From the sequence record FR725450.1: DNA of 23,750 bases; one strand, given 5' to 3'. Numbering within the stretch: the first letter of the stretch is position 1; every line of letters begins with the position of its first letter. This document shows, in pieces, positions 1 through 23,744 of the stretch. Position numbers and translations under genes: made by a program. The notes beneath the pieces are model-generated. The model was not told the DNA's origin. It saw nothing but the letters and a program-made list of their open reading frames with translations, and made no database searches.

Positions 1-8
1 GATCTTGT

Positions 9-824
9 TTAAATGAAATCCGTTATCCTGGACGGCTTCCTGCGGGACTTGCGTTCAATTCTTGTCCTGGCTTTTTGCTGCATTTCGCTCAACTCGCCTC
101 TCATGGCCAGGAACTGGAGCGCGTTGCGCGGCGCGCCGGCGTTGTAGTGGTTGTTAAAGTAGGCATACGTCACAGGGACCTGCGCCTCCACCTCTTTCAG
201 CTTGTCAACCCATGGCAGCAGTTCTTCTTCCGAATAGGTGTACTCGTACCAGACGGGCTTGCCCCTTCCGTGCCACCTTATGTACGCATGAGTTGATGAG
301 GTCACGACGATCTTTGACAGAAACTCTATCGGGGATTCGGTTATCGTGTTTGCGACATTGTGTTTCTTTAGCAGATCCCACATCTCCTTTCTGTCCCACG
401 ACTCGTGCCGGAACTCGACTGCAAAGTGTATGTGAGAAGGCAACAGTCCCAGAAAGGATTCCAGCCTGCCTATCTCGTCATAGGAAAAGCTGGGCGCAAG
501 CTGCACAAGCAGGCAGCCGAGCTTGCCTGCGTCCTCCAGCGGCTTGATGACGTCCAGGAACTTTGCCAGGTCGTCCTCCGCGCCGCCTGCAAGGCGCCTG
601 TCATGCGTTATCGTCTTTGGGAGTTTCAGCGAGAACTTGAACGACAGTCCTGTCGCCTTTTCCCATCCCTTCACCATCGACTTGGTCGGCATGCGGTAGA
701 ACGACGAATCGACTTCGACCGTGTCAAACACCTTGGCGTAAAACGGGAGCTTGGCAACCCTGTTGTTTGGGTAGAAAAGCCCTACCCATTCCTGGTAACT
801 CCACCCGCTGGTGCCAAGGAGCAA
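9..824 (-). CDS. DUF72 (YecE-like) family protein, host gene
   Basis: Family motifs GTSGWSY..W...FYP, TVEVDSSFY, FSLKLPKTITH, LLVQLAPSF, AVEFRHESW, YIRWHGR, YFNNH. The TTG start has a TATA-like ATAAATAT 24-31 nt upstream (855..848, minus strand). Confidence 0.93.
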   Translation of the reverse strand: MLLGTSGWSYQEWVGLFYPNNRVAKLPFYAKVFDTVEVDSSFYRMPTKSMVKGWEKATGLSFKFSLKLPKTITHDRRLAGGAEDDLAKFLDVIKPLEDAGKLGCLLVQLAPSFSYDEIGRLESFLGLLPSHIHFAVEFRHESWDRKEMWDLLKKHNVANTITESPIEFLSKIVVTSSTHAYIRWHGRGKPVWYEYTYSEEELLPWVDKLKEVEAQVPVTYAYFNNHYNAGAPRNALQFLAMRGELSEMQQKARTRIERKSRRKPSRITDFI

Positions 825-1352: not shown

Positions 1353-2245
1353 TTGTCGGCTGAAAGGATGGCTCTTGAAGAGTATGAATATGCCCTGCAG
1401 CAGGCGCGCCTTGCACACGGTGAAGTGAAAAAGTGGATAATCTATGCAGGCGAGCAGCTGGAAATAGCCGGCGTCCAGAAGGAGAAAATATCCACAAAAT
1501 TGCGAAATGACCTGCCGGGCGTCTCGGCCGATTACATAAGCCAGATCTGTAGCCAGATGGGGTGGACGGACAGGCGTTTTCCCCCGGGGTTGAGAAAACT
1601 AAGCCTGAAAATAGTTCCACTCCTTCTGCTTCTTCAGAGCAGCCGCAACAAGTCCACAATGATGATAATAACAAGGCAGCAGCGGAGGAGGAGCCTGACA
1701 AGGCAAGGTGCAGCAAGGAAAACCAGCCCTATATCGACCACCTGCAGAGAAAGATCGAGTTTCTGCAGGACGTGCAAAAGAAGCTCCGCGACAGGCCATT
1801 TCTGTCCCTGCTTGAGAAAAAGCAGTACGACGAGTACATCATGCTTGCAGACAGGGCGGAAAAGCTTGCGCGGGAGGCCTGGGATGCAAGGCAGACCATA
1901 CCTGTTGCCACGCAGTTTTACCTTGCGCAGATAGTGGCGACCTGTACAATCAAGCACGGCGCAAGCGAGTACGTTTCAAAGGTCAAGGACCTTTTTGGGC
2001 TGACGAGCAAGCAGGTCACCAAGACGCTCAAGGGAGTAGTCCGCGACGTGCACTGCCTCTACGAGCCGACAAACAGGGCAGAGGCCCTGATGGACGGCTT
2101 TTACGGCAGGCCATGCGAAAAGTGCGGCAACTGGCGGGTGAAATGGGAAAACGGCATGTGCCATTGCTTCCACTGCGACAGCGACTACCGCGCAAAAGCC
2201 GAGAGGCTGCCGCTGGCAAGGGAACAGGGCGAGTGGTCCAACTAG
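1353..2245 (+). pseudogene. Frameshift-split ~297 aa viral protein with C-terminal Zn ribbon (candidate regulator): pseudogene, sequencing error or recoded gene
   Basis: The N-terminal part (1353-~1580, MSAERMALEEYEY...GWTDRRF) looks protein-like and then becomes compositionally odd. The -1 frame (1562..2245) carries on with a natural-looking sequence ending CEKCGNWRVKWENGMCHCFHC. The junction is TTTTCCCCCGGGG (1577-1589). Confidence 0.7.
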
Positions 2246-2262
2246 CTCTTTTGGTTTGCAAA

Positions 2263-3633
2263 ATGCCATCAAAATCTGAGGTACAGGATGATAATTCTAA
2301 AATACAGGCCCTGAAGGGCAAGCCATTCTGGATCTGGAGCAAGAAAAAGCATGCAAAAAAATCCAAAGACTGCTGTTGCTTTAACCACATTGTCGGCCTG
2401 CCCGTCAAAAACGGCAGGGCCATGCCTATGTTTGACTATGAGAAAAAGATCCACGACCTGCTTGCAAAAAAGGGAAGAAAAGAGAAACAGAAGGACAAGC
2501 ACCTGTGGGTGAAAAAAGCCACAGGGCTTGGGGTGACTGAACTCCTGCTGAGGTACATGGCCTGGCTGTGCTACCGTGACGATTCGTGCAGGGGCGCGCA
2601 GATGTGCATCGTCACCGGCCCGAACAAGGAGCTTGCCAAGGGGCTCATAACCCGGCTAAAGGAGATCTGCAAGGACGTTGAAAAGCTGGAGTCAAAAGAG
2701 ACGGTGGTCGTCCTGAACGGCTGCAGGATAGAGGCTTTTCCGTCGCACCACCTCGACGCGATGCGCGCCCTTGCCAGGCCGGCGTTCATACTCCTTGACG
2801 AGGCCGACTTTTTCCCGCCAAAAGAGCAGAAAAACGCCCGCGACGTCGCAGAGCGCTACATAGCCAAGAGCGACCCGTACATAGTATTGGTGAGCACGCC
2901 CAACATGCCCGGCGGCCTGTACGAGAGCATAGAAAAGGAGGCAGAAGCGCAGTGCATCTACCACAGGCTCCACCTTGATTACAAGGCCGGGCTGAACAAG
3001 ATCTACACAAGAGCCGAGATTGAAAAGGCGCGCAAGTCGCCAAGCTTTGAAAGAGAGTATAACTTGAAGTACGGCTACGGCACAGGCAACATTTTTCCCT
3101 ACCAGCTTGTGGACGCCTGCGTCATGGAATATGACCCTGCGCTGCAAAAGGGCGCATCGGACAGGGTGCTTGCCGTGGACCCTGCCTACGGTTCCAGCAA
3201 GTTTGCCTTGGTAGGCATTGAGCGGCTGGACGAAATGCTGTACGTCAAGGAGGCAAGGCAGTACGAGCGCCCGTCTCCTGCCGCCATGCTCGAGGTGGTT
3301 GCCGAGTTTGCCCGCCAGTACCCGACTGTGCTCGTAGACTCGGCGCATCCGGGGCTAATCAGGGACTTGCAGGAAAAAGGGGTGGACGCACAGCCGGTAA
3401 ACTTTGCAAAAAATCTTGCCGACATGACAAGTGCGGCGGCGCGGGTCGTAACGGAAAAGAAGGTAAGGATACACCCTGCCTTTACGGATCTGCAGTACCA
3501 GCTAAAGGCGGCAGTGTACAATGATAAAGGCCACCCGGACAAGCGCAAACTGTCGTTTGACCTTGGCGATTGTATGTTGATGCTTGCCTATTATTGCCTC
3601 CGCCAAGATGGATTATTCATGGCCGAGATCTGA
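2263..3633 (+). CDS. terL: Terminase large subunit
   Basis: Walker A-like KKATGLGVTE, Walker B ILLDEADF, coupling motif VSTP, RNase H-fold VLAVDPAYG and distal DLGD. Start set at ATG 2263, just after the upstream stop (456 aa). Confidence 0.92.
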   Translation: MPSKSEVQDDNSKIQALKGKPFWIWSKKKHAKKSKDCCCFNHIVGLPVKNGRAMPMFDYEKKIHDLLAKKGRKEKQKDKHLWVKKATGLGVTELLLRYMAWLCYRDDSCRGAQMCIVTGPNKELAKGLITRLKEICKDVEKLESKETVVVLNGCRIEAFPSHHLDAMRALARPAFILLDEADFFPPKEQKNARDVAERYIAKSDPYIVLVSTPNMPGGLYESIEKEAEAQCIYHRLHLDYKAGLNKIYTRAEIEKARKSPSFEREYNLKYGYGTGNIFPYQLVDACVMEYDPALQKGASDRVLAVDPAYGSSKFALVGIERLDEMLYVKEARQYERPSPAAMLEVVAEFARQYPTVLVDSAHPGLIRDLQEKGVDAQPVNFAKNLADMTSAAARVVTEKKVRIHPAFTDLQYQLKAAVYNDKGHPDKRKLSFDLGDCMLMLAYYCLRQDGLFMAEI

Positions 3634-4428: not shown

Positions 4429-5841
4429 GTGAACCTGCGTTTCTGGCGGCCAAAGCAAGAGGTCTATGGCGTCACGCTTTCAGAGCCGAGTACTAACTCG
4501 TCGTCCCAGGTCTCTGACTATTCGCAGTACCAGCTGTACGTCAGGCCCGAGGTCGACTTTCAGACGTGCTACGAATACTACCGCACAATAGGCAAGGTGC
4601 AGAACGCCGTCGAGTCGTACGTCGCCGAGATCCTGTCGCGGGACTGGTACTTTGAGGGCGCGCAGGAAGGCGTGCAGGCGTGCGAAGAGTGGGAGGACCG
4701 GTTCAACCTCTCGCGCATCATCGAATACATTGTCCGCGACTGGCTCGTATGCGGAAATTCCATCATCGGCATCTCTGACTGGCAGCCCGTGCAAATATCG
4801 TCGATAGCAGGCGTAAGGCGCAGCCCGTACGGGATTGCAGAGCAGTTCGTGCAGGTAGTCAACGGCCGGGAGGTGCCTCTTGACGCGTCGCGCTTTATCC
4901 ACACGCAGTACATCGAGGTAAACCGCGAGGCGTGGGGCATCGGCATGTTCCACTCGCTCCTGACAACGTTTGACTATGGCAGCAGGAAAAGGTCGCTTCC
5001 GCACCTGGAGATCTACCGGCGGCAGATACAGCTTTTCTACAAGATACTGGAAAGGTACGGCTCGCCGGTGACCGTGTGGTTCTTTGAGAACGTGGCCAAG
5101 GCCGAGTTTGACCGGCAGGTCGAGGAGCTGCGGGCGCTGGAGCCGGGCGACAGGCGCATACTTTCAAAAAAGGTCGAGATAGCGACAGAGACTGTCGACG
5201 CGCGGGGCAACCTCATCAACGCGACGTCGCCGGTGATAAACCAGGAAATCGAGGCAGGGTTGCAGACGTCTGCGAACCGGCTGATAACGCAGCCGAGCGC
5301 GATGGCAGATGCCAGAATAGGATCAGAGTACGATGACTCGAAAACTACTGCGATCATGGAAAAGATCAGGCGCGTAATGAATGTCTTGATAATTCCAAAG
5401 ATAACGTTAGCAAGAGTGGAGTTCAAGTGGGGCAAAAAAGACAACTTTGAATTTGATTTCAATCAGTTATTGCAGGCCAAGAGCGCCGGATTTGTTTCTT
5501 CAGAAGAAGGCAGGGCGATCCTGCAGTCTGTTGGCTGGAAACTGGATGACAATCTTTTCAACGCACAGCAGCAATTACAAAAGCAGGAAGACTTTCGTTT
5601 TTTAAATGAAAGAGTGCGGCATATAATTTGCAGCACTCTTCAGGAATTCAATCCATACCACGATGAACGCGGCCGTTTTGCTAGTGCTACAGGCGCCACT
5701 AATTTCTCTGTCGTAGCAACAAAAAGACCAAGAAATTCAAAAGTCAACATAAATGAGCCCATTATACAATCTGAAACACCTACTGAGCAACACAGAATTA
5801 GAGCAAGAAAAAGTGATACAAAACTTTCCCAACAAGATTAG
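4429..5841 (+). CDS. Portal protein with a low-GC C-terminal extension containing an NPYHDERGRF motif
   Basis: Located between TerL and protease/MCP. Portal-like segments (VQNAVESYVAEIL, IVRDWLVCGNS, WGIGMFHSLL, EFKWG). The core ends near 5550, and codon usage turns AT-rich from ~5310. Confidence 0.88.
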   Translation: MNLRFWRPKQEVYGVTLSEPSTNSSSQVSDYSQYQLYVRPEVDFQTCYEYYRTIGKVQNAVESYVAEILSRDWYFEGAQEGVQACEEWEDRFNLSRIIEYIVRDWLVCGNSIIGISDWQPVQISSIAGVRRSPYGIAEQFVQVVNGREVPLDASRFIHTQYIEVNREAWGIGMFHSLLTTFDYGSRKRSLPHLEIYRRQIQLFYKILERYGSPVTVWFFENVAKAEFDRQVEELRALEPGDRRILSKKVEIATETVDARGNLINATSPVINQEIEAGLQTSANRLITQPSAMADARIGSEYDDSKTTAIMEKIRRVMNVLIIPKITLARVEFKWGKKDNFEFDFNQLLQAKSAGFVSSEEGRAILQSVGWKLDDNLFNAQQQLQKQEDFRFLNERVRHIICSTLQEFNPYHDERGRFASATGATNFSVVATKRPRNSKVNINEPIIQSETPTEQHRIRARKSDTKLSQQD

Positions 5842-6445
5842 TGAAGAAACTGCTACAGAGCAGATCTACAAAGCAGAAAAGATAAGAGAGCAGTTTGTAA
5901 ATTTAGCCGACAGGCAAATTGATGATATTTCCGCAGCATATCCTGATGCAGAGGTGACTGCTAGAATAAAAGATAGTTCGAGTATGGTTGAAAAAGTTTT
6001 GCGCAAGCCGAATCAATACAACGATGTATCGCAATTACAAGATACACTAGGTGTTAGAGTAGTTACTAAAGATCTGGATGAACTTGAAACGATCACATCA
6101 GATCTAACAACTAGATACGAAGTTGTATCTGAGGTTAGTTATGTTGATGTACCAAAGCTAGATGGCTATAGAGGCTATCATCTAAATGTAAAAGACAAAT
6201 ACACAGGTCTTGTGAATGAGATACAGATAAGAACAAAGAATCAAGACAAGTGGGCGGATCTTATGCACAATAGAGTTTACAAACCGTCAAAGGAATTAGA
6301 AGAGAGAGTCAGAATGAATCAAGATTCAATATACAAATATGCAAATGAACTTTCAGACTATTATTACAGACTTGATTCAGGCGAGAAAAAAGTTAAAAAA
6401 CCTGAAATATCTAAAATAATTAGAGACATACTAGGAGATGACTAA
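5753..6445 (+). CDS. RelA/SpoT-family small alarmone synthetase domain (putative toxin)
   Basis: All synthetase motifs present: RIKDSSSMVEKVLRK, LQDTLGVRVV, GYRGYH, EIQIRT..QDKWADLMHNRVYK. No hydrolase or regulatory domains. Overlaps the portal 3' end by 89 nt in the +1 frame. Confidence 0.92.
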   Translation: MSPLYNLKHLLSNTELEQEKVIQNFPNKISEETATEQIYKAEKIREQFVNLADRQIDDISAAYPDAEVTARIKDSSSMVEKVLRKPNQYNDVSQLQDTLGVRVVTKDLDELETITSDLTTRYEVVSEVSYVDVPKLDGYRGYHLNVKDKYTGLVNEIQIRTKNQDKWADLMHNRVYKPSKELEERVRMNQDSIYKYANELSDYYYRLDSGEKKVKKPEISKIIRDILGDD

Positions 6446-6656
6446 CACGGATAATTTCATCACAAAGATGTTAGATGATGTTGACAGGCATACACCCAAA
6501 ACAGGCTATAATCTTGTTGTGATAGATGATTTCGAGCCTTTTGGTGAGCAGCTCTATACCTTAGGACACTACGAGACCTATGAAGCAGCTCTTGCAGCCC
6601 AAGAACAACTTAGTGGCAACACTGTAATTTATCCACACAAGCGCGAAAAAGAATGA
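6438..6656 (+). CDS. Putative immunity/antitoxin protein (72 aa, acidic)
   Basis: Start overlaps the synthetase stop (ATGACTAA), same low-GC island. Role inferred from position only. Confidence 0.55.
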   Translation: MTNTDNFITKMLDDVDRHTPKTGYNLVVIDDFEPFGEQLYTLGHYETYEAALAAQEQLSGNTVIYPHKREKE

Positions 6657-6865
6657 TTGAAAAGCATCCTAGAAATATTATCTATGCTAATAAGCCTGAC
6701 TGCCCTGAAATAGTACGTAAAACGATCGGATGTATGGAGGAAGACTGACACATGGTTGAAGAAACTTGGCTTGACAAGAAGGGCATTTCGACACGTATGA
6801 TGAAGCTTTAGAGGCTCAGAAAAAAATACAAAGGCAATTCGGTAATTTATGGACCTGATGATTGA
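6653..6865 (+). pseudogene. Decayed paralog of the upstream immunity-like gene
   Basis: Reconstructed C-terminus GHFDTYDEALEAQKKYKGNSVIYGPDD matches GHYETYEAALAAQEQLSGNTVIYPHK of 6438..6656. It has an in-frame TGA (6746-6748), a missing base near 6780 and an extra A in the A7 tract (6820-6826). Its ATG overlaps the previous stop (ATGA). Confidence 0.7.
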
Positions 6866-6894
6866 ATAACCTTTGGCCCGTAGAACTCGTACAG

Positions 6895-6928: not shown

Positions 6929-8659
6929 GTGAAACCTCAAGTCAAGATCGAGTTTGTCACATCTGCCAAGGAAAAGAAAAGGATTGCCGGCATACTTGCA
7001 ATCCCACGCATTTCAAGAAACGGCAATCTGTACCTGCCCGAAGAACTGGAAAAAGCGCACGGCAGAACGGTCCCCGTACTATGGAACCACGAGGGCAGCC
7101 CAAAGAGCGCCAGCGAGCCTGTACGCCAGTCCGACGTCATTGGCGCAATGCGCCTTTTCTGGGACTCTGACCTGATGCAATTAAAGTACGAGGCCGAGGT
7201 GGACCGCGACCTGCCGGAAATCCCACTGCATACCTCGCTGGGCGCGTTTTTCGAGCGCGAGGACCATGTCTGCGGAAACACGCGCTGCTACTCTGTTCCC
7301 CGCGGCCTGCGCTTTGTGGAAGCGTCGCTAACCCCTACGCCAGGCATCCCGGAAACAACAGTCAAGATCCTAGAGAATTTTGCGTGCAGGCAATGCCGGC
7401 TTAGTTCTCTTACAAGCGAAGCATCCAACCGGGGTATCATGTCTTCTTCAAACAACGATTCAGGTGGCGGACAGGATACGTCGTGCATCACAAGCAAGCA
7501 GTTCCAGGACGGCATCAAGAGCCTGATAGACGCAATGGGCAGGCGCTTTGCAGACAAGCAGCAGCTGCAAACAGAGGCAGCGGCAAGGGCGCCTTCGAGC
7601 ATGGTCGACGACTCGAACACGCGCGCAAGGCAGGAGTCGTACAACCGCGTGGTAGAGTTTTTCCAGCGCGTCAAGGAAAACCCAAAGGATGTCTCGTTCC
7701 CGGCAGTCTCGTGGAACATTGACAAGAACGAGTACCTTGGAAGGTGGGGCTACAACATCAGCCCGCGCGCCAAGAAAGAGGCAGTGACGATAACCGCCGG
7801 CGACATGGGGCAGGTCTTTTCAAAGCAGATCCTAGTCGTCCCGGGCGGCAGGATGAAGATTCCTGTGAGGCAGTACTGCAACTTTACTGAAATCCCTGCA
7901 GGAAACGACAGGGCACATTTCTACACGATAGGCGCATTTGACTTTGGCACGATAACCGAGGGGACAGAGCCCACAAACGTGTCGCAGACCGTGAGCAAAA
8001 AGACGGCCACGCCTTCAATACGCGGGGCGGTCCAGCGCGTCGGCTACTCGCAGGTAGAGAACGCGCCTTTCGGCCTCGTGGATGCGATAAACGAGGCGAT
8101 GGTCCTTGCCTCGATAGATGATGAAGCTTCCGACCTGCTGTCGACAACGTACGACGCCATAACGCCCACCAACTGGGTCCGCGCAGACACCGGAGCTGCG
8201 ATAACCTTGGACGATGTTGCAAGCCTGACGTTCAAGCGCGAGGGGTTGCTTGCGGCAAAGCGCCTGATAGCGCAGCAGGGCCACGACGTGAGCCCCGGCA
8301 ACCTCGTGCTTTTCATGCACCCAAAGGCGTACCAGGAGCTCCTGCTTGACACCAACCTGAACAACTTTTACCAGTACGCCCGGCCGGAGATAACTGCGAC
8401 CGGCATACTTGAGCAGATATATGGAGTCGACATCGTGATCGCCGATCAGGTAAAGGCACAGGACAACACCACAAACGACACGTACCGCAACGTTCTTGCG
8501 GTCAAGGGCGTGGCCTTTGGCATGGCCTCTGCAAGGAACGTGACTATGGAGGCCCAGCGCAGGAACGAGACCCAGCAGGTGGTGCTGTCAGGGACGCACA
8601 GGGTAAAATCGGTAGTCATTGACGAGACTGCAAGCTGCCGCATATCGTCGGCTCAGTAA
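6929..8659 (+). CDS. Prohead protease-scaffold-major capsid protein (HK97 fold) polyprotein
   Basis: N-terminal protease motifs (SRNGNLY, PVLWNHEG, TSLG, RFVEASLTPTPGIPET), a low-complexity/coiled linker, then an MCP-like region (GTITEGTE, LVLFMHPKAYQELL, IYGVDIVIADQV). Confidence 0.88.
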   Translation: MKPQVKIEFVTSAKEKKRIAGILAIPRISRNGNLYLPEELEKAHGRTVPVLWNHEGSPKSASEPVRQSDVIGAMRLFWDSDLMQLKYEAEVDRDLPEIPLHTSLGAFFEREDHVCGNTRCYSVPRGLRFVEASLTPTPGIPETTVKILENFACRQCRLSSLTSEASNRGIMSSSNNDSGGGQDTSCITSKQFQDGIKSLIDAMGRRFADKQQLQTEAAARAPSSMVDDSNTRARQESYNRVVEFFQRVKENPKDVSFPAVSWNIDKNEYLGRWGYNISPRAKKEAVTITAGDMGQVFSKQILVVPGGRMKIPVRQYCNFTEIPAGNDRAHFYTIGAFDFGTITEGTEPTNVSQTVSKKTATPSIRGAVQRVGYSQVENAPFGLVDAINEAMVLASIDDEASDLLSTTYDAITPTNWVRADTGAAITLDDVASLTFKREGLLAAKRLIAQQGHDVSPGNLVLFMHPKAYQELLLDTNLNNFYQYARPEITATGILEQIYGVDIVIADQVKAQDNTTNDTYRNVLAVKGVAFGMASARNVTMEAQRRNETQQVVLSGTHRVKSVVIDETASCRISSAQ

Positions 8660-9201: not shown

Positions 9202-9501
9202 ATGTGTAAAAAAGATGGTGAGTATTTGGGAGCATTGGACCACATCAACAGAGAAGAGTTCCAGAATTTCCGCCAGGATGCCGGCGAGCACTTCAAGATG
9301 CTGCACGAGTGCGACAGGCGCATAGAGCGCAAGATAGACGAGCTTGCCGCCCTGCTGGAGCCCGTGCTTGACGAGCACGCCCAGAGCATGGAAAGCAGGC
9401 GCGGCAGGCGTGAGGTCAAGATGCTTGCGATAGGCGCCGCCCTTGGCGCGTTCTTTAGCGCAGTGACAGCCGCGATGCTGCTTCTTTTCCAGCTGGGCTA
9501 G
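9202..9501 (+). CDS. Coiled-coil protein with a C-terminal transmembrane helix (holin/lysis-like candidate)
   Basis: Charged coiled region followed by MLAIGAALGAFFSAVTAAMLLLF. Start uncertain (TTG 9226 possible). Confidence 0.6.
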   Translation: MCKKDGEYLGALDHINREEFQNFRQDAGEHFKMLHECDRRIERKIDELAALLEPVLDEHAQSMESRRGRREVKMLAIGAALGAFFSAVTAAMLLLFQLG

Positions 9502-9509
9502 TTCTTTTT
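9499..9509 (+). promoter_or_regulatory. Putative late-promoter motif copy
   Basis: TAGTTCTTTTT, 35 nt before ATG 9534. Confidence 0.7.
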
Positions 9510-9533
9510 GCCCTTTTTCTGCAAGAGACTTTC

Positions 9534-9743
9534 ATGAGCGATCCATCCGTAGAAAAAGTGAGCCTGAACGCCAAGGAGATAATCCTTGCAATAGTGGTGT
9601 CTGCCGGGGCAGTCACGGCCCTGGTCTCTGCCGGCGCGCTCTGGACCGGACACGCAGAGATAGCGGAAAAGGCGGGCCTTGCGTTTGTGAGCGGCATCGT
9701 GGGCTTTGGCGCGGGCATCGTGACTGCGCTGTGGGGCCGCTAG
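9534..9743 (+). CDS. Small two-TM membrane protein (holin-like candidate)
   Basis: Two hydrophobic helices (IILAIVVSAGAVTALVSAGALW; LAFVSGIVGFGAGIVTALW) in 69 aa. Confidence 0.6.
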   Translation: MSDPSVEKVSLNAKEIILAIVVSAGAVTALVSAGALWTGHAEIAEKAGLAFVSGIVGFGAGIVTALWGR

Positions 9744-9750: not shown

Positions 9751-9776
9751 CTGGTTTTCTTTCATTTTTGTTGTTT

Positions 9777-10256
9777 GTGGGAGCAGCAGTAGAACATCTG
9801 TGCTTTACATTCGATGTCTGCGTAGTTGGTTTTGGACATTCTTCCTTAAGATGCATTGAATGTGGTCTTGTACTTGAAACTGAAAACTGTAAATGGGTTG
9901 CAATTGACGGCAGGCCAATATGCATAAAACATCATCATGATATCACATACACAGACGTTGAGAAAAACTATTCCAAGTTTATTGCAGGTACAACCAAACG
10001 TAATTTTACATTTGATCCGGAAACTGGAAAGGCATACGATGCAACTGATCCTGAATGCGCAAAGAAATTTTACGAAATATATGGAGACCGTAAAAACAAC
10101 GTCGCCTTAATTGCCATAACTAATAATAGATCTAATAGTCTGAATGATACTACAAAAAGAGCATTTCATAAACTGCAAAAAGAACAAAAAGATCGTTCGT
10201 TGGGAGGTGGATATCTGATGGAAACAAAACATACACCGATATATCCTTCGCTGTAG
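9777..10256 (+). CDS. Low-GC accessory protein with a Cys/His Zn-binding cluster
   Basis: RCIECG...C...PICIKHHH. AT-rich codons unlike the neighbours. Start is 9768 (TTG) or 9777 (GTG). Confidence 0.65.
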   Translation: MGAAVEHLCFTFDVCVVGFGHSSLRCIECGLVLETENCKWVAIDGRPICIKHHHDITYTDVEKNYSKFIAGTTKRNFTFDPETGKAYDATDPECAKKFYEIYGDRKNNVALIAITNNRSNSLNDTTKRAFHKLQKEQKDRSLGGGYLMETKHTPIYPSL

Positions 10257-10352
10257 CAGGACAAAACGACAGCGAGCTTGGAATGCTGTTAAAGCGCTAT
10301 AAGCAAGAAGCAATATTGATTATCGGCAAGAACGGAAAAATAAGGTGGTTAT

Positions 10353-10544
10353 ATGAAGAGTGAACAAAAAAGACTGGGCGGGCTTAAGTTCAAGAACCCT
10401 TGGCCAACAAGAGTTGAAGGAGATGTGCTTCCTATAGCTGTCATCTATCGTCTAATGTTCTTGGGATTCTCTGACAGAGATCTTTCACCTGAAGCTAGAG
10501 AAGCTCTTTACGCATATACTGCTACATTTAGCGACACACAATAG
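10353..10544 (+). CDS. Low-GC hypothetical protein (63 aa)
   Basis: SD-like AAGGTGG ~8 nt upstream of ATG; no family recognised. Confidence 0.55.
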   Translation: MKSEQKRLGGLKFKNPWPTRVEGDVLPIAVIYRLMFLGFSDRDLSPEAREALYAYTATFSDTQ

Positions 10545-10587
10545 AAAAAGGAATAATGACGACTGGTAACAACAACGACGTGTATAT

Positions 10588-10600
10588 TAGTTCTCAATTT
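10588..10600 (+). promoter_or_regulatory. Putative late-promoter motif copy
   Basis: TAGTTCTCAATTT, 35 nt before ATG 10623. Confidence 0.72.
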
Positions 10601-10622
10601 CTCCACCTTGTAACTTTATTGC

Positions 10623-10805
10623 ATGTCGTCATCATCACCGCCCGTCTGTCCTTGGGACAACGAAAAACTGCAAGCACTTGAAGGCCGGTTCCAGTTCGTC
10701 TGCGAAAAGCACGGCGAAAGGGGCCGGTTCTTCTGGGACGTCGTGCTAAACGGCGCAGGCACGCTGGGCTCGTTCCGCTGGACAGACTACCCGCCTTCGG
10801 ACTAG
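10623..10805 (+). CDS. Hypothetical viral protein (60 aa)
   Basis: ORF with the motif at canonical spacing; has Cys/His residues; no family recognised. Confidence 0.6.
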   Translation: MSSSSPPVCPWDNEKLQALEGRFQFVCEKHGERGRFFWDVVLNGAGTLGSFRWTDYPPSD

Positions 10806-10811
10806 TAGTGT

Positions 10812-10823
10812 TAGTTCTCTTTT
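10812..10823 (+). promoter_or_regulatory. Putative late-promoter motif copy
   Basis: TAGTTCTCTTTT, 35 nt before ATG 10847. Confidence 0.78.
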
Positions 10824-11358: not shown

Positions 11359-12237
11359 ATGTCGTATACCCCGACAGGCAGTTTTAACATACTGAAACGC
11401 CTCCAATTTGTTGAAGAAAGTACTTTTGGCCAAGCCCCTGCCTCTCCGTCGTTTGTGCTTGCAGGCCACAACGTCTCGCTGCGCGAGACCACCGAGGTCT
11501 CGGCGCAAAAGTACCGGGACCTCGGGAGCAGGGACCTGTACAAGATGCTAAAGACGGGCGAGATGTACTCCTTTGAGCTGCGCTACCAGCCGATAAACAC
11601 CGCCCTTCTCAGGTACGGGACAGAGCTTCCAAACGGCGCTGGCACGATAGAAAAGTCGCTTGCGTTTGTCTACACGCAGCTCGTCAACGGGACGGAGACG
11701 TGGCACAGGTTCCTCGGCGCAAGGACAGACCAGGTGGAAATCGAGGTGACAGAGGCGTCCGTGCAGGTGTCGCACCGCTTTTTGTGCAAGGACATACCCG
11801 CCACCGTCACCGCAGACCCGTTCACCACGCCCACGTACGCCGGCGCCGACACGTCGGCCCCGTACACGGGTGTCTCTTCCGGCTCCAACCCGCTTACCAT
11901 AAACTCGGAGACGTACGACACGCCGCGCTTCAAGGTGTCGGTCAACTGGAACCTGGACGTCGTCAAGCCAAACGGCGAGGTGCAGGCCAAGTTCATCCTG
12001 CCCACAAACCGCGACATCACAGTCGAGTTTGACACGTGGGTCAAGGACGACGTGCTTCGCGCAGACACCAAGTCGCTTGCGGCAAGGTCTGCCAGCTACA
12101 CCATTGCGCCCGGCAAGTCGCTCACGTTCACGGACCTGTACCTTGCAAAGCAGAGCAAGAACAACGACGCAAACGACGCCAAGGTCCTTATCGAGACGCT
12201 GACCGGGACTGCCAGGTCGATGTCGGTGAGCCCGTGA
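11359..12237 (+). CDS. Major tail tube protein
   Basis: N-terminal LQFVEESTFGQAP typical of siphovirus tube proteins; beta-rich, Thr/Ser-rich, 292 aa; precedes the chaperones and TMP. Confidence 0.8.
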   Translation: MSYTPTGSFNILKRLQFVEESTFGQAPASPSFVLAGHNVSLRETTEVSAQKYRDLGSRDLYKMLKTGEMYSFELRYQPINTALLRYGTELPNGAGTIEKSLAFVYTQLVNGTETWHRFLGARTDQVEIEVTEASVQVSHRFLCKDIPATVTADPFTTPTYAGADTSAPYTGVSSGSNPLTINSETYDTPRFKVSVNWNLDVVKPNGEVQAKFILPTNRDITVEFDTWVKDDVLRADTKSLAARSASYTIAPGKSLTFTDLYLAKQSKNNDANDAKVLIETLTGTARSMSVSP

Positions 12238-21371: not shown

Positions 21372-22169
21372 TCAGTGTGCTTCTTTTACCAGCTGGTACT
21401 TTGACGTGTAGCCTCGCGGGTTTATCATCATGCCCTTGTAGTTGTAGGTCGACGAGTTGCCCACGATGACCGTCGTTATCATGCCAAGCATGTCCTGGTG
21501 CTCGAGCATCTTGTCAATAGTTGTCATGACCACCTGCTGGGTCTCCCTGTACGCGCCCTTGATTATTGCAACCGGGGTTTCCGGCTTTCTGTATCGTAGA
21601 AAAATGTCGCGGGTGTCGCGCAGCTGGTGCACGCGCTTTTTGCTTGCAGGATTGTAGATGACGGTGACATAGTCGCCAAGCGCGGCCGCTTCGACCCTCT
21701 TGACTATCATGTCCCACGGGACCAGAAGGTCGCTCATGCTGACGACTGCAAAGTCTGTCATCAGAGGAGACCCGACAAGGGCTGCGCAAGAATTGAGAGA
21801 CGAGACTCCTGGCACGCACTCGACATAGATGCCAGAATCCTTGTCCCAGCCTTTTTCCGCAAGAATTTCGTAGATGAGCCCGACCATGCCGTAGATGCCC
21901 GGGTCGCCGGATGAAACAAGCGAAACGATCCTTCCCTTTTCTGCAAACTCGATTGCCTGGTTTGCCCTGTCCACTTCTTGCGTCATGGCATAGCGGTACA
22001 CTTCCTTGCCCTGTATGAGGTCCTCTACCAGGCCGACGTACGTTTCATAGCCGACTATTACCTCGCTTTCCTGAATGACCTGCTTTGCCCTGTACGTCAT
22101 GTGGTCGTGGTGGCCGGGGCCTACGCCTACCACGTACAGCTTGCCTTTCTTTGCAGGTTCACCTGTCAT
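21372..22169 (-). CDS. cbiH: Precorrin-3B C17-methyltransferase (cobalamin biosynthesis)
   Basis: LYVVGVGPG, VIVGYETYV, LVSSGDPGIYGM, VPGVSS, DFAVVSMSDLLVPW, IYNPASKKR, VIVGNS, NPRGY. Confidence 0.95.
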   Translation of the reverse strand: MTGEPAKKGKLYVVGVGPGHHDHMTYRAKQVIQESEVIVGYETYVGLVEDLIQGKEVYRYAMTQEVDRANQAIEFAEKGRIVSLVSSGDPGIYGMVGLIYEILAEKGWDKDSGIYVECVPGVSSLNSCAALVGSPLMTDFAVVSMSDLLVPWDMIVKRVEAAALGDYVTVIYNPASKKRVHQLRDTRDIFLRYRKPETPVAIIKGAYRETQQVVMTTIDKMLEHQDMLGMITTVIVGNSSTYNYKGMMINPRGYTSKYQLVKEAH

Positions 22170-22721: not shown

Positions 22722-23744
22722 TCATTCCCTTACCAGAAAGGCTCCAGTCCAGCCCTTCTCCGCAAACTCTGTCTTGTGGGCGTGGAACATGTACTGTCCA
22801 GGGTACTTGTACGTGAATTCCAGTATTGCACGCTCGCCCTGGCTCATAGTCACCATGTCCGCGTACTCGTCAGGAGTAAGGCTTGTGCCAGTGCGGTACA
22901 GGTGGAACAGGTTTCCGTGCAGGTGGAAATTGTTTATCTGGTCAAATTCGAGTATGTTTACCAGATACACGCGTACCGATTGATTCTTTTCAATCTGTAT
23001 TGGGTGATGCATGTAGTAGAACGGGATGCCGTTTACCGTGTAGAAATTATTTTCAGTGTCAAAATCAGTGTCGTACCCATTCATCATCATCACCATTTCA
23101 TCGGCTGGCGGGCGCGGCCCCTTCGGGTCGACGATGTATGCGCCATAAAGACCGTGGGCAATATGTTCTTCAAGGGGCTGTACATGGCAATGGTATAGGT
23201 GTAAGCCAAAGGGCTCCGCCGTAAACTCGTAGATAAATCGGCCTCCCGGCGCGACTTGATCAAATGCACCATCCATTTCAGCGGCATGGATACTGTGAAA
23301 GTGCATCGTGTGTGGAAGAGTGCCATTATTGACAAAGTGGATGCGCACAAGGTCGCCTTCAGTTGCGCGGATCGTAGGACCGGGGACGGTGCCATTGAAC
23401 GTCCACACATTGTAGGAAACGCCTGGCGACACTTCCATCACTCGCTTGTCGTCTGCCACTATCGTAAACTCTCGAAGAGTTGTCCCGTCAGGCAGCTTTG
23501 ACACGTGCCCGTAGTTGAACTCGCGCAGATATTTGTCAGGATCTACAACTGCATTGCTCAGTTGCCTGCTATCATGCTCTGGGTCAAGCACGTCGCCTGT
23601 CGTCCTGTAGATGCCTGTACTGTGGCCTGCGACCATCTTGTCTTCATTTTGCGCCCCTGCCTGCATTTTAACCGACGAAAAAGCCATCACGCTTCCTGCA
23701 ACAGCTACAGCCATAACCGCCACCAGCAACATATTGCCGGACAA
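22722..23744 (-). CDS. Secreted two-domain multicopper oxidase (T1 site in domain 1); 5' end may extend beyond the window
   Basis: Signal peptide; domain 1 HTMHFH and YHCHVQPLEEHIAHGL; domain 2 FHLHG and FHAH (no T1 Cys). The frame is open to the window edge. Confidence 0.9.
   Translation of the reverse strand: MSGNMLLVAVMAVAVAGSVMAFSSVKMQAGAQNEDKMVAGHSTGIYRTTGDVLDPEHDSRQLSNAVVDPDKYLREFNYGHVSKLPDGTTLREFTIVADDKRVMEVSPGVSYNVWTFNGTVPGPTIRATEGDLVRIHFVNNGTLPHTMHFHSIHAAEMDGAFDQVAPGGRFIYEFTAEPFGLHLYHCHVQPLEEHIAHGLYGAYIVDPKGPRPPADEMVMMMNGYDTDFDTENNFYTVNGIPFYYMHHPIQIEKNQSVRVYLVNILEFDQINNFHLHGNLFHLYRTGTSLTPDEYADMVTMSQGERAILEFTYKYPGQYMFHAHKTEFAEKGWTGAFLVRE

Follow-up and report, generated by a model that had tools for sequence, protein, structure and literature searches.

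A probable exchangeable effector-immunity cassette on the portal C-terminus of a Nitrososphaera-type provirus, with a RelA/SpoT domain parted from the portal by one nucleotide

How an open reading frame (ORF) for a small RelA/SpoT-type synthetase came to lie across the end of a viral portal gene, in another reading frame and with a small overlapping gene behind it, is the question raised by this locus. The window analyzed is the whole stretch of 23,750 nucleotides taken from sequence record FR725450.1, and all positions are counted from its first letter. The provirus is a tailed element of a soil ammonia-oxidizing Nitrososphaera-type archaeon, very probably the one published as Nvie-Pro1; the protease-major capsid protein fusion of the locus agrees with the published description (PMC6563490). 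The arrangement is probably a polymorphic effector-immunity cassette on the C-terminus of the provirus portal, in which the RelA/SpoT domain was separated by a recent 1-nt insertion in an A-run. The products of the cassette would be toxic, protective, and delivered by the virion. The features of the locus are listed in Table 1.

Table 1. Positions of the portal, cassette, and neighboring features in the window.
Feature	Position	Strand	Basis and remarks
TerL (large terminase)	2113–3633		PHROG 1.4e-22; upstream of portal in head module
Portal gene	4429–5841	+	470 aa; Pfam Portal_Mu at aa 48–345; stop TAG 5839–5841
AT-rich variable region	5329–6894	+	Composition and blastn borders; between conserved portal core and conserved right flank
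Junction motif LQEFNPYHDERGRFAS	5638–5685	+	Putative carrier/cassette boundary; alignment and blastn borders
RelA/SpoT-type small alarmone synthetase-like domain, putative toxin	5753–6445	+	Pfam, PDB alignment, AlphaFold, Foldseek
A5 run, portal/synthetase frame joint	5808–5812	+	DNA alignment: +1 nt relative to three related cassettes
72-aa putative immunity (neutralizing) protein	6438–6656	+	Homologs directly behind synthetase genes
Remnant of displaced older cassette	6684–6873	+	Blastn, alignment and translation against L003
Protease-major capsid protein fusion	6929–8659	+	PHROG major head protein matches; right neighbor of variable site
Second cassette, same system	9768–10544	+	Second AT-rich island; translations and alignments

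The portal gene was classed as Mu-like by its match to Portal_Mu (PF06074; 8.5e-08, 32.3 bits against a curated cut-off of 23.9) and by its place after the large terminase gene in the head module, with the capsid gene next. Its conserved core extends to approximately position 5550 (...SVGWKLDD). Past a helix-linker and the junction motif, a tail of 60 aa ends at the TAG codon because of the frame break. Beyond the core, the protein reads into EFNPYHDERGRFAS and on to LQEFNPYHDERGRFAS, in which F407 lies at 5647 and the codon of S419 ends at 5685. Both an extension of the portal into a motif at 5647–5685 and an AT-rich turn within the gene had been noticed in the original prediction, and they agree with the translation and the composition, respectively. 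The portal gene has a G+C content of 0.55–0.61 across its first 900 nt; the value is 0.39 from approximately 5329 and 0.33–0.43 up to approximately 6890, after which it is again 0.57–0.59.

The borders of the variable site were located using blastn. In comparisons with five related loci, homology on the left stops at 5551–5664, and in all four loci spanning the site (L003, L005, L006, and L007) the right homology begins at 6894/6895; the conserved right flank begins 35 nt upstream of the protease-capsid gene, which is kept in all related loci. These mosaic borders are common to the related loci that span the site. The alignment of L008 to the window was limited to 5644–6009. Portal homology to L003 stops at 5664 and cassette homology to L007 and L008 begins at 5643, giving an overlap at 5643–5664. 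Extended portals keep the motif, as do the Zn-ribbon carriers of L007 and L008. As judged from these alignments, it marks where the carrier gives way to the cassette; it is also a probable recombination joint and may be a processing site as well. The portal, the synthetase, and those other ORFs that were scanned gave no MuF model match with Pfam (E ≤ 0.1 and E ≤ 0.01) or PHROGs. Membership of the MuF family was rejected since no MuF domain was found, in line with what had been stated earlier.

The portal survey comprised approximately 20 portal clusters of one genus-level group and yielded 87 homologs of 372–671 aa, the closest of which are named Nitrososphaera portal proteins. It rests on the protein-cluster search and contig look-ups, since the contig scans were nearly empty: the portal had no relative among the viral contigs and recovered L007 only among the genome contigs, and the metagenome contigs gave nothing with either the portal alignment or a degenerate DNA pattern for ERYGSPVTxWFF. 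Tipped portals, 70–79% identical, have in-frame C-terminal fusions after the motif xEFNxxHDxxxGxF and a G/S-rich linker. The tip is a RelA/SpoT domain in P0002, an HExxH domain in P0003, and a domain of approximately 130 aa (domain X) in P0004, P0005, P0007, P0009, and P0022; eleven other portals have no tip and end just past the core sequence SVGWKLDD. Any of the three tips, or none, is found on portals at 65–81% identity, and small ORFs lie downstream of each tip type. The site is empty in L009, where the capsid gene begins 120 nt past a 372-aa portal. The proposal that the portal itself is the toxin carrier is supported by these exchangeable in-frame domains beyond the same motif: the C-termini are variable rather than invariant, and an in-frame RelA/SpoT homolog exists. 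The HExxH tip, domain X, and the small partner ORFs had no match in Pfam, and Foldseek found no PDB neighbor for domain X (best E 0.028). Since domain X and the HExxH tip have no recognized toxin fold or family, "toxin" is a putative label for all three tip families. A literature search on portal-borne toxins in archaeal viruses returned nothing relevant.

The synthetase ORF lies in the +1 frame relative to the portal and overlaps it by 89 nt, as first described; the coordinates of the portal stop and the ORF start agree with this. It was assigned to RelA_SpoT (PF04607; 3.8e-20, 72.7 bits against a cut-off of 27), and its alignment to RelQ/YjbM structures (1.5e-13) spans the RxK...S, DxxGxR, GYRxYH, and EIQIRT motifs. 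In a 50-sequence alignment, all ten clade-invariant residues (R71, K73, K81, D97, Y139, H143, E156, Q158, H172, and Y176) are present, so the earlier observation that the synthetase motifs are all intact is upheld. Judged by its sequence, the cassette encodes a RelA/SpoT-type pyrophosphokinase with all catalytic residues present. These motifs do not tell the substrate; motif swaps are reported to have left specificity unchanged (PMC12226406).

The AlphaFold (AF2) model of the ORF has a mean pLDDT of 93.8, with low confidence at residues 1–13. Foldseek placed RelP, RelQ, and CapRel (TM 0.61 for the last) at the top of its PDB matches, with a probability of 1.00 for these three and for Rel. The first 19 or so codons are out-of-frame overlap with the portal tail only, and the conserved, confidently folded part begins at approximately 5810–5813. 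By sequence, the domain is nearer to the housekeeping RelQ/RelP enzymes (1.5e-13) than to FaRel2 (4e-3), and it scored 57.5 bits with the YjbM equivalog NF053588 (NCBIfam), for which the cut-off is 320. It matched the PADLOC candidate-defense family PDC-S33 (1.2e-21). A word-based homolog search with the synthetase recovered itself and one weak match only, and a literature search on small alarmone synthetases in Nitrososphaera gave nothing relevant.

In the nearest synthetase relatives, the domain is at the extreme C-terminus of longer proteins; a motif of the junction type lies upstream of it in many of them, and minor-head (MuF-like) N-domains are present in some. HPRDxxGxF-type versions of the motif occur in 35 of the 150 nearest relatives, with up to four copies per protein. 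Widespread between the domains of these proteins, this motif is a candidate processing or packaging signal; a literature search on it found nothing relevant. No portal was detected among the same 150 relatives with a portal HMM, and the portal-synthetase fusion therefore seems limited to this virus group.

The 72-aa ORF overlaps the synthetase stop by 8 nt (ATGACTAA), in agreement with the gene placed there originally. Its homologs, 58–82% identical, lie directly behind the synthetase in L003 (68 aa) and L008 (87 aa). The family is also found without a synthetase, as the orphan P0239 on the P0003 contig and as a fragment in L005, both loci having another toxin type. The role of immunity gene proposed for this ORF fits such a pattern, which resembles that of a cognate immunity gene. 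No match to the ORF was found in Pfam, PHROG, PADLOC, or NCBIfam, and the word-based search returned three proteins only. Tips and partners co-vary, the 72-aa family going with the synthetase and a 61–63-aa family with domain X; partners of the latter are the tandem 61/62-aa ORFs of L005, the overlapping 63-aa ORF of P0007, and the L010 array.

Displaced or orphan cassette pieces were found at 6684–6873 and as P0239, the L005 fragment, and the L010 array. In the window, the remnant consists of the final 19 codons of a synthetase of the L003 type (stop 6746–6748) and of its immunity gene from ATG 6752, which has an internal deletion of approximately 94 nt and a changed A-run length. In blastn, it is 93.8% and 92.2% identical to L003, against 76–84% for the flanking core genes. 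In the second cassette, the ORF at 9768–10256, which lost its C-terminal end through a frame change, is a Zn-ribbon carrier fused to the approximately 130-aa domain X, and a 63-aa immunity-like ORF lies behind it at 10353–10544. In alignments, the parts of this cassette correspond to portal C-terminal domains and to small ORFs from L005 and L010, and the island at 9772–10813 is missing from L005 (blastn).

The frame break was localized by DNA alignment, in which L008, L007, and L003 have a 1-nt gap opposite the A5 run; the P0167/L008 and P0002 proteins are in frame across its position. Homology in the synthetase frame begins at residue 21 of the ORF (GTG 5813), so the frames join in the A-run. 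The original prediction had offered two explanations, a slip site CTT TCC C at 5824–5830 and a 1-nt indel. The slip site was rejected since it lies downstream of the start of synthetase-frame homology, and the indel is seen in the alignment as one extra nucleotide relative to the three related cassettes. All four synthetase cassettes of the virus group are broken, each at another place: L003 by one extra base in an A7 run in mid-domain, L007 by several frame changes, and L008 by deletion of the catalytic core. The suggestion that a minority of portal subunits bears the toxin by frameshifting does not agree with relatives that are in frame at the A-run, so that all their portal subunits would bear the domain, or with the other three cassettes being broken elsewhere. 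Taken together, the portal carrier, the immunity-like gene, and the indel option were retained, and the slip site and minority-subunit frameshifting were not.

L001 and L002, which are independent SRA-run assemblies, are 100% identical to the window across 5600–6700, and the exact 470-aa portal is present on 18 contigs; the frame break is therefore not a one-off assembly error. An in-frame version of this element was not found among 5.8 billion proteins. The shift site and the frame arrangement are not conserved among homologs. The break is read here as a recent mutational split of a portal-toxin fusion, not as conserved recoding.

The synthetase ORF remains open across 230 codons of AT-rich sequence, with the same allele in every assembly examined. 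This fits continued use as well as very recent mutation, and continued use could be as a free protein or via rare frameshifting.

The mechanism proposed for the split fusion is as follows. Portals of this group consist of the core alone or of the core extended by the junction motif (EFNxxHDxxxGxF), then a Gly/Ser-rich linker, and finally a C-terminal domain drawn from several unrelated types, each of which has its own small gene downstream. New cassettes seem to recombine in at the motif, while older ones are pushed downstream and decay. In the intact state, the portal C-terminus would face the capsid interior, so the domain would be built into the head. It would probably be cleaved near the motif and exit with the DNA into the next cell, where its pyrophosphorylation targets could be adenine or guanine nucleotides or the 3′ ends of tRNAs; lysogens and producer cells would be shielded by the small protein. 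In the present provirus, the one-nucleotide insertion in the A-run has parted the domain from the portal, which stops 10 codons on, and has left the synthetase only as a +1 ORF. The free domain would be at most a low-level product from ATG 5753 or GTG 5813, giving a toxin-antitoxin-like pair.

Three other readings and a technical one were weighed against the split fusion. According to the first, which we consider unlikely, the locus is a stand-alone toxin-antitoxin or abortive-infection module like the bacterial toxSAS, with its own expression from ATG 5753 or GTG 5813 and with the virion link gone. The ORF is complete and offers possible starts; GTG 5813 (210 aa), the choice of the gene caller, is exactly where the conserved domain begins. 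The 8-nt overlap with the partner gene and the PDC-S33 match also suit such a module, and prophage-borne toxSAS defense modules are known in bacteria, with CapRel among the fold matches. However, both candidate starts are inside the portal ORF and have no recognizable ribosome-binding sequence, residues 1–13 of the ORF are unstructured overlap, and all cassette relatives are fused to a carrier (portal or Zn-ribbon protein). A stand-alone module accounts for the present state only, and not for the architecture or the polymorphism.

There is a small chance that the locus belongs to a working virion-delivered polymorphic toxin system in tailed viruses of ammonia-oxidizing archaea, in which the breaks in the A5 run and in the A7 run of L003 are reversible or recoded switches setting the share of portal subunits that bear the RelA/SpoT toxin. 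The portal C-terminus and the small Zn-ribbon head protein would then be the carriers of exchangeable toxin-immunity cassettes. In both cases the break is a single surplus base within an A-run, which could be a hint of switching instead of decay.

Programmed +1 recoding, by which a fraction of ribosomes (or RNA polymerases) would slip at the A-run with AAA re-pairing on AAA in the P site and a minority of portal subunits would carry the synthetase, is very improbable. The shift needed is indeed +1, re-pairing at 5809–5812 would be perfect, the synthetase domain is wholly intact, and the same allele recurs on the 18 contigs; the extra base of L003 would require the same +1 correction. Yet P0002, P0167/L008, and L007 are in frame through the site with different nucleotides, and the breaks of L003, L007, and L008 lie elsewhere, the catalytic-core deletion among them. 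The next 0-frame codon after the A-run is AGT, and the site has neither an in-frame stop nor a known slow codon, and RNA folding downstream of it gave no structure beyond that of shuffled sequences (z = −0.83). A run of five A is short for transcriptional slippage. CTT TCC C, which lies past the start of synthetase-frame homology, is likewise without a stop codon.

A homopolymer sequencing or assembly error hiding a true in-frame fusion of approximately 670 aa was rejected as having a negligible probability: homopolymer runs are a classic error site on some platforms, but the independent assemblies are identical across the break, the exact product recurs on 18 contigs, and the 5.8-billion-protein collection holds no near-identical in-frame protein.

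The split portal-toxin fusion was compared with known systems, beginning with polymorphic toxins in general. Of the features by which these are recognized (Zhang et al. 2012), four were found here: a constant carrier with unrelated tips, a co-varying small gene, a junction motif, and displaced cassettes. Among polymorphic toxins, CdiA-CT/CdiI and Rhs systems similarly have a conserved junction motif at which the variable tip starts (cf. VENN, PxxxxDPxGL), an immunity gene immediately downstream, and, past the active cassette, orphan remnants of tips and immunity genes that have been displaced (PMC3482391). They differ in that the vehicle here would be the virion instead of a secretion system, the motif is another one, and the host is archaeal. 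A junction motif, replaced cassettes, orphaned immunity genes, and toxins in decay make up a full arms-race signature, which points to virus-virus or virus-host conflict among ammonia-oxidizing archaea; Nitrososphaera are soil nitrifiers with almost no known virus biology.

[quoted passage not shown] Shared with them are a head-associated carrier in the packaging module of a temperate element, a RelA/SpoT-like domain at the C-terminus, an immunity gene just behind it, and predicted capsid loading and delivery with DNA; the minor-head (MuF-like) N-domains of several of the nearest relatives of this synthetase add to the likeness. In contrast, the carrier here is the portal itself, without a MuF domain in the scanned ORFs, the host is archaeal, no known immunity family is matched by the 72-aa partner, a hydrolase-type immunity is absent, and the fusion is broken.

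Portals fused to enzymatic domains, predicted to be packaged and injected, have been described in bacteriophages (Iyer et al. 2017, 2022; PMC5512222, PMC9503650). The HPRDxxGxF punctuation between domains of the long synthetase-bearing proteins found here is similar to what these accounts present. As far as the two accounts describe them, the domains on bacterial-phage portals are 2H, PBECR, InPase, Nudix, and ART, and there is no mention of cognate immunity genes, of turnover of cassettes, or of arrays of orphans, whereas the tips studied here are polymorphic between close relatives and have small partner genes. MuF-family head-delivered toxins and portal-effector fusions are known from bacteriophages only; the present system is archaeal, portal-borne, and polymorphic.

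With regard to the frame arrangement, +1 frameshifts of the prfB and Ty1 type resemble the locus in the downstream ORF being in +1 and in a re-pairing codon at the junction. They differ from it in that no conserved shift site, in-frame stop, known hungry codon, or stimulator was found here, and the relatives are in frame.

With the toxSAS enzymes (CapRel, FaRel2, and PhRel2) and the T6SS effector Tas1/Apk1, which are growth-arresting weapons, the cassette shares a small RelA/SpoT-fold enzyme and an adjacent, here putative, neutralizing gene. Use of the stringent response is not known from archaea, and a RelA/SpoT-type toxin could act in them via ATP depletion, (p)ppApp, or tRNA 3′-end modification rather than alarmone signaling. 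Unlike toxSAS, this synthetase has no fused antitoxin domain, and its ancestry would be that of a fused virion-protein tip. The split observed here may show the origin of a stand-alone toxSAS pair from a virion-borne toxin.

The window contains a head-tail provirus lying between host genes (see the table below). Homologs of its portal carry the annotation Nitrososphaera portal protein. A fusion of protease and capsid protein has been published as the hallmark of Nvie-Pro1, a provirus of Nitrososphaera viennensis (PMC6563490); we infer from this, rather than from a direct match, that the window provirus is Nvie-Pro1. The related provirus locus L006 also has a DUF72 host gene at its left edge (1-232, minus strand), which suggests a common integration neighbourhood in different Nitrososphaera genomes.

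Features of the provirus and its host flanks in the window
Feature	Coordinates	Strand	Remark
DUF72	9-824	-	host flank, left
Large terminase	2113-3633		PHROG 1.4e-22
Mu-type portal	4429-5841		Pfam Portal_Mu, aa 48-345
Synthetase ORF	5753-6445		first cassette
72-aa ORF	6438-6656		first cassette, putative immunity gene
Cassette remnant	6684-6873		L003-type
Protease-major-capsid fusion	6929-8659		
Two small ORFs	9202-9743		99 and 69 aa
Zn-ribbon-domain X ORF	9768-10256		predicted second cassette
63-aa ORF	10353-10544		predicted second cassette, partner-like
Tail tube	11359-12237		
Tetrapyrrole methylase	21372-22169		host flank
Multicopper oxidase	22722-23744		host flank

The portal search returned 87 homologs (372-671 aa), the closest of which (65-81% identity) fall into two forms, one ending after the core and the other extended. 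Eleven portals stop a few to ~30 residues past the conserved ...SVGWKLDD; in locus L009, where the portal has 372 aa, the capsid gene starts just 120 nt further on, and this is an empty site. In the extended portals, the core is followed by a short helix, then the motif xEFNxxHDxxxGxF(S/T)SGG, a linker rich in Gly/Ser, and one of several C-terminal domains that are unrelated to each other. These are a RelA/SpoT domain, in frame over the junction, in P0002 (portal 79% identical), an HExxH-motif domain of ~260 aa in P0003 (671 aa), and a ~130-aa domain, named domain X here, in P0004, P0005, P0007, P0009, and P0022. The P0008 and L007 portals end ~33 residues past the motif, i.e., as stubs. Thus, the survey of portal homologs proposed in the original prediction did reveal variable domains past the motif. 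Domain X has a confident predicted fold (pLDDT 84.5), with no match in the Pfam scan and no PDB neighbour in the fold comparison.

In the window, the GC content falls from 0.55-0.61 to 0.39 at ~5329, about 900 nt inside the portal gene, and stays at 0.33-0.43 until ~6890. The portal extends past its core into LQEFNPYHDERGRFAS (5638-5685), with its stop at 5839-5841, and is overlapped by 89 nt, in the +1 frame, by an ORF encoding a RelA/SpoT synthetase domain (Pfam 3.8e-20; every motif aligned with RelQ/YjbM structures, 1.5e-13). All ten residues invariant in the clade (50-sequence alignment) are kept; the AlphaFold model (mean pLDDT 93.8) has RelP, RelQ, and CapRel as top fold matches. The 72-aa ORF begins before the synthetase stop, giving an 8-nt overlap. 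All descriptive points originally made on 5310-6656 (GC, motif, overlap, synthetase, and small ORF) were upheld. A conserved two-cysteine tail, KPxCPxxxxxxxGC(L/M), ends most synthetase relatives and the remnant copy of the window (6689-6745); both cysteines are missing from the intact synthetase (…KKPEISKIIRDILGDD).

In P0002 and in P0167, the Zn-ribbon carrier of locus L008 (60% identical), a single open frame runs through the stretch where the window shifts. In the window, portal-frame homology lasts until about 5808, and synthetase-frame homology begins at residue 21 (GTG 5813); the first ~19 codons of the synthetase ORF are overlap only, with low AlphaFold confidence for residues 1-13. 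In the DNA alignment, L008, L007, and L003 share one gap of 1 nt where the window has its A-rich stretch, so the A5 run 5808-5812 contains an additional nucleotide in the window. This agrees with the 1-nt indel offered as one explanation of the fusion; the other, a slip at CTT TCC C (5824-5830), is wrongly placed, being downstream of the frame junction.

The frame break is probably a mutational split of a portal-synthetase fusion, and the portal-tip cassette of the window is a broken example. After such a split, free synthetase may start at ATG 5753 or GTG 5813, possibly coupled to termination of the portal 26 nt farther on; that the free domain and its 72-aa partner now function as a toxin-antitoxin-like pair is rather doubtful. 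Conserved or functional recoding at the A-run is quite improbable: +1 re-pairing of AAA on AAA is possible, the synthetase domain is intact, and both the window and L003 have one extra A, but the site is not conserved, the three remaining synthetase cassettes (L003, L007, and L008) are broken at other places, no RNA structure was found downstream of the A-run (z = -0.83), and no in-frame version of the window element occurred among the proteins searched. An assembly artefact is scarcely credible; the break is real DNA, because over 5600-6700 the window is matched at 100% identity by two independent assemblies of SRA runs and the exact 470-aa portal is present on 18 contigs. In L003, the in-frame fusion P0002 is broken mid-domain by one extra base (+1) at an A7 run (7653-7659), a lesion like that of the window but located elsewhere. 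The L007 cassette has several frame changes, and that of L008 has lost the catalytic core; their immunity genes are mostly intact.

The 72-aa ORF, originally proposed as an immunity gene, appears by its distribution to be a cognate partner, with homologs behind synthetases and orphans elsewhere. The family shares the core HTPKTGYNLVGIDDFE..G.QLY, and its members in L003 (68 aa, 58% identity) and L008 (87 aa, 82%) stand behind the synthetase. P0239 (85 aa, 80% identity) is the second small gene after the P0003 fusion, where the synthetase is absent, and a homolog fragment follows the domain X cassette of L005. On the P0003 contig (JGI 3300071358), the 671-aa fusion is followed by four small genes of 107, 85, 61, and 63 aa, the last two of which are possible members of the domain X partner family. 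That family consists of proteins of 61-63 aa, encoded in tandem in L005 and by ORFs that overlap the stop of the portal gene in P0007 and L010. Behind the portal-domain X fusion of L010, a 248-aa ORF (2774-3520) forms an immunity-like/domain X/immunity-like chain, read here as a putative in-frame array of displaced cassettes. The window remnant comprises the last 19 synthetase codons and an immunity gene with a ~94-nt deletion, left from an older L003-type cassette; its identity to L003 (92-94%, against 76-84% for core genes) suggests recent cassette exchange between proviruses. Judged from sequence, the locus has tips that vary, partners that co-vary with them, a motif at the junction, and displaced orphans, which together define a polymorphic toxin system at the genomic level.

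Mosaic borders became evident when the window was compared with five related loci by blastn. Left homology stops at 5551-5664 and right homology resumes at 6894/6895, 35 nt before the capsid gene, in the four site-spanning loci (L003, L005, L006, and L007); L008, a 1,952-bp contig, matches only at 5644-6009. The portal flank is shared with L003 up to 5664, and the synthetase cassettes on the other carrier (L007 and L008) match from 5643. Because these flank and cassette homologies overlap exactly on the codons for EFNPYHD, the motif is the carrier-cassette joint, the role of VENN and PxxxxDPxGL in CdiA and Rhs toxins (PMC3482391). Of the 150 nearest relatives of the synthetase, 35 have HPRDxxGxF-type versions of the motif, with up to four copies in proteins of 1,000-1,800 aa; this recurrence would fit a signal of general use in processing or packaging. 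In the multidomain relatives P0095, P0113, P0115, P0139, and P0160 (1,200-1,800 aa), HPRDxxG(K/Q/R)F is repeated two to four times, ~140-500 residues apart, like punctuation between domains; no family model and no paper describing this motif was found.

A second AT-rich island (9772-10813) is missing from L005 (blastn). It includes a Zn-ribbon (CxxC) protein fused to domain X, whose C-terminal end was lost through a frame change, and a 63-aa ORF that is a distant relative of the small ORFs following domain X in L005 and L010; 9768-10544 is thus a predicted second effector-immunity cassette. The same kind of Zn-ribbon carrier bears the motif, linker, and synthetase in L007 and L008. Since domain X and synthetase tips occur on both portal and Zn-ribbon proteins, cassettes move between these two carriers. 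The 99-aa and 69-aa ORFs between the head genes and this cassette have hydrophobic Gly/Ala-rich stretches and could be membrane proteins.

In solved portal structures, the C-terminus points into the capsid interior; therefore, head assembly would incorporate in-frame tips at the portal vertex. Because the portal itself remains on the capsid, a tip would have to be cleaved off for delivery. An invariant aromatic residue closes the motif, the flexible G/S linker comes next, and the capsid protein of the window carries a fused chymotrypsin-like protease (PMC6563490); it is a reasonable guess that the chain is cut after the aromatic residue. Once in a recipient cell, the synthetase would pyrophosphorylate ATP/ADP, GTP/GDP, or tRNA 3' ends, the substrate not being readable from sequence (PMC12226406). 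If the recipient is an archaeon, alarmone signalling seems a less plausible mode of action than ATP depletion or tRNA inactivation. The 72-aa protein would shield lysogens and producers.

In the nearest relatives of the synthetase (37-45% identity), this domain forms the C-terminal tip of a longer protein, and several of these proteins have minor-head (MuF-like) N-domains. The literature search found no report of a portal as a polymorphic toxin carrier with immunity cassettes in an archaeal provirus. In bacteria, MuF polymorphic toxins with RelA-like tips and immunities are established (PMC5576092, PMC12226406), and bacteriophages are described in which the portal is fused to effector domains (PMC5512222, PMC9503650). 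In contrast to both, the system described here belongs to an archaeal provirus, no MuF domain was detected in the portal, the synthetase, or the other window ORFs scanned, the portal itself is the polymorphic carrier, and immunity cassettes and orphan arrays accompany it.
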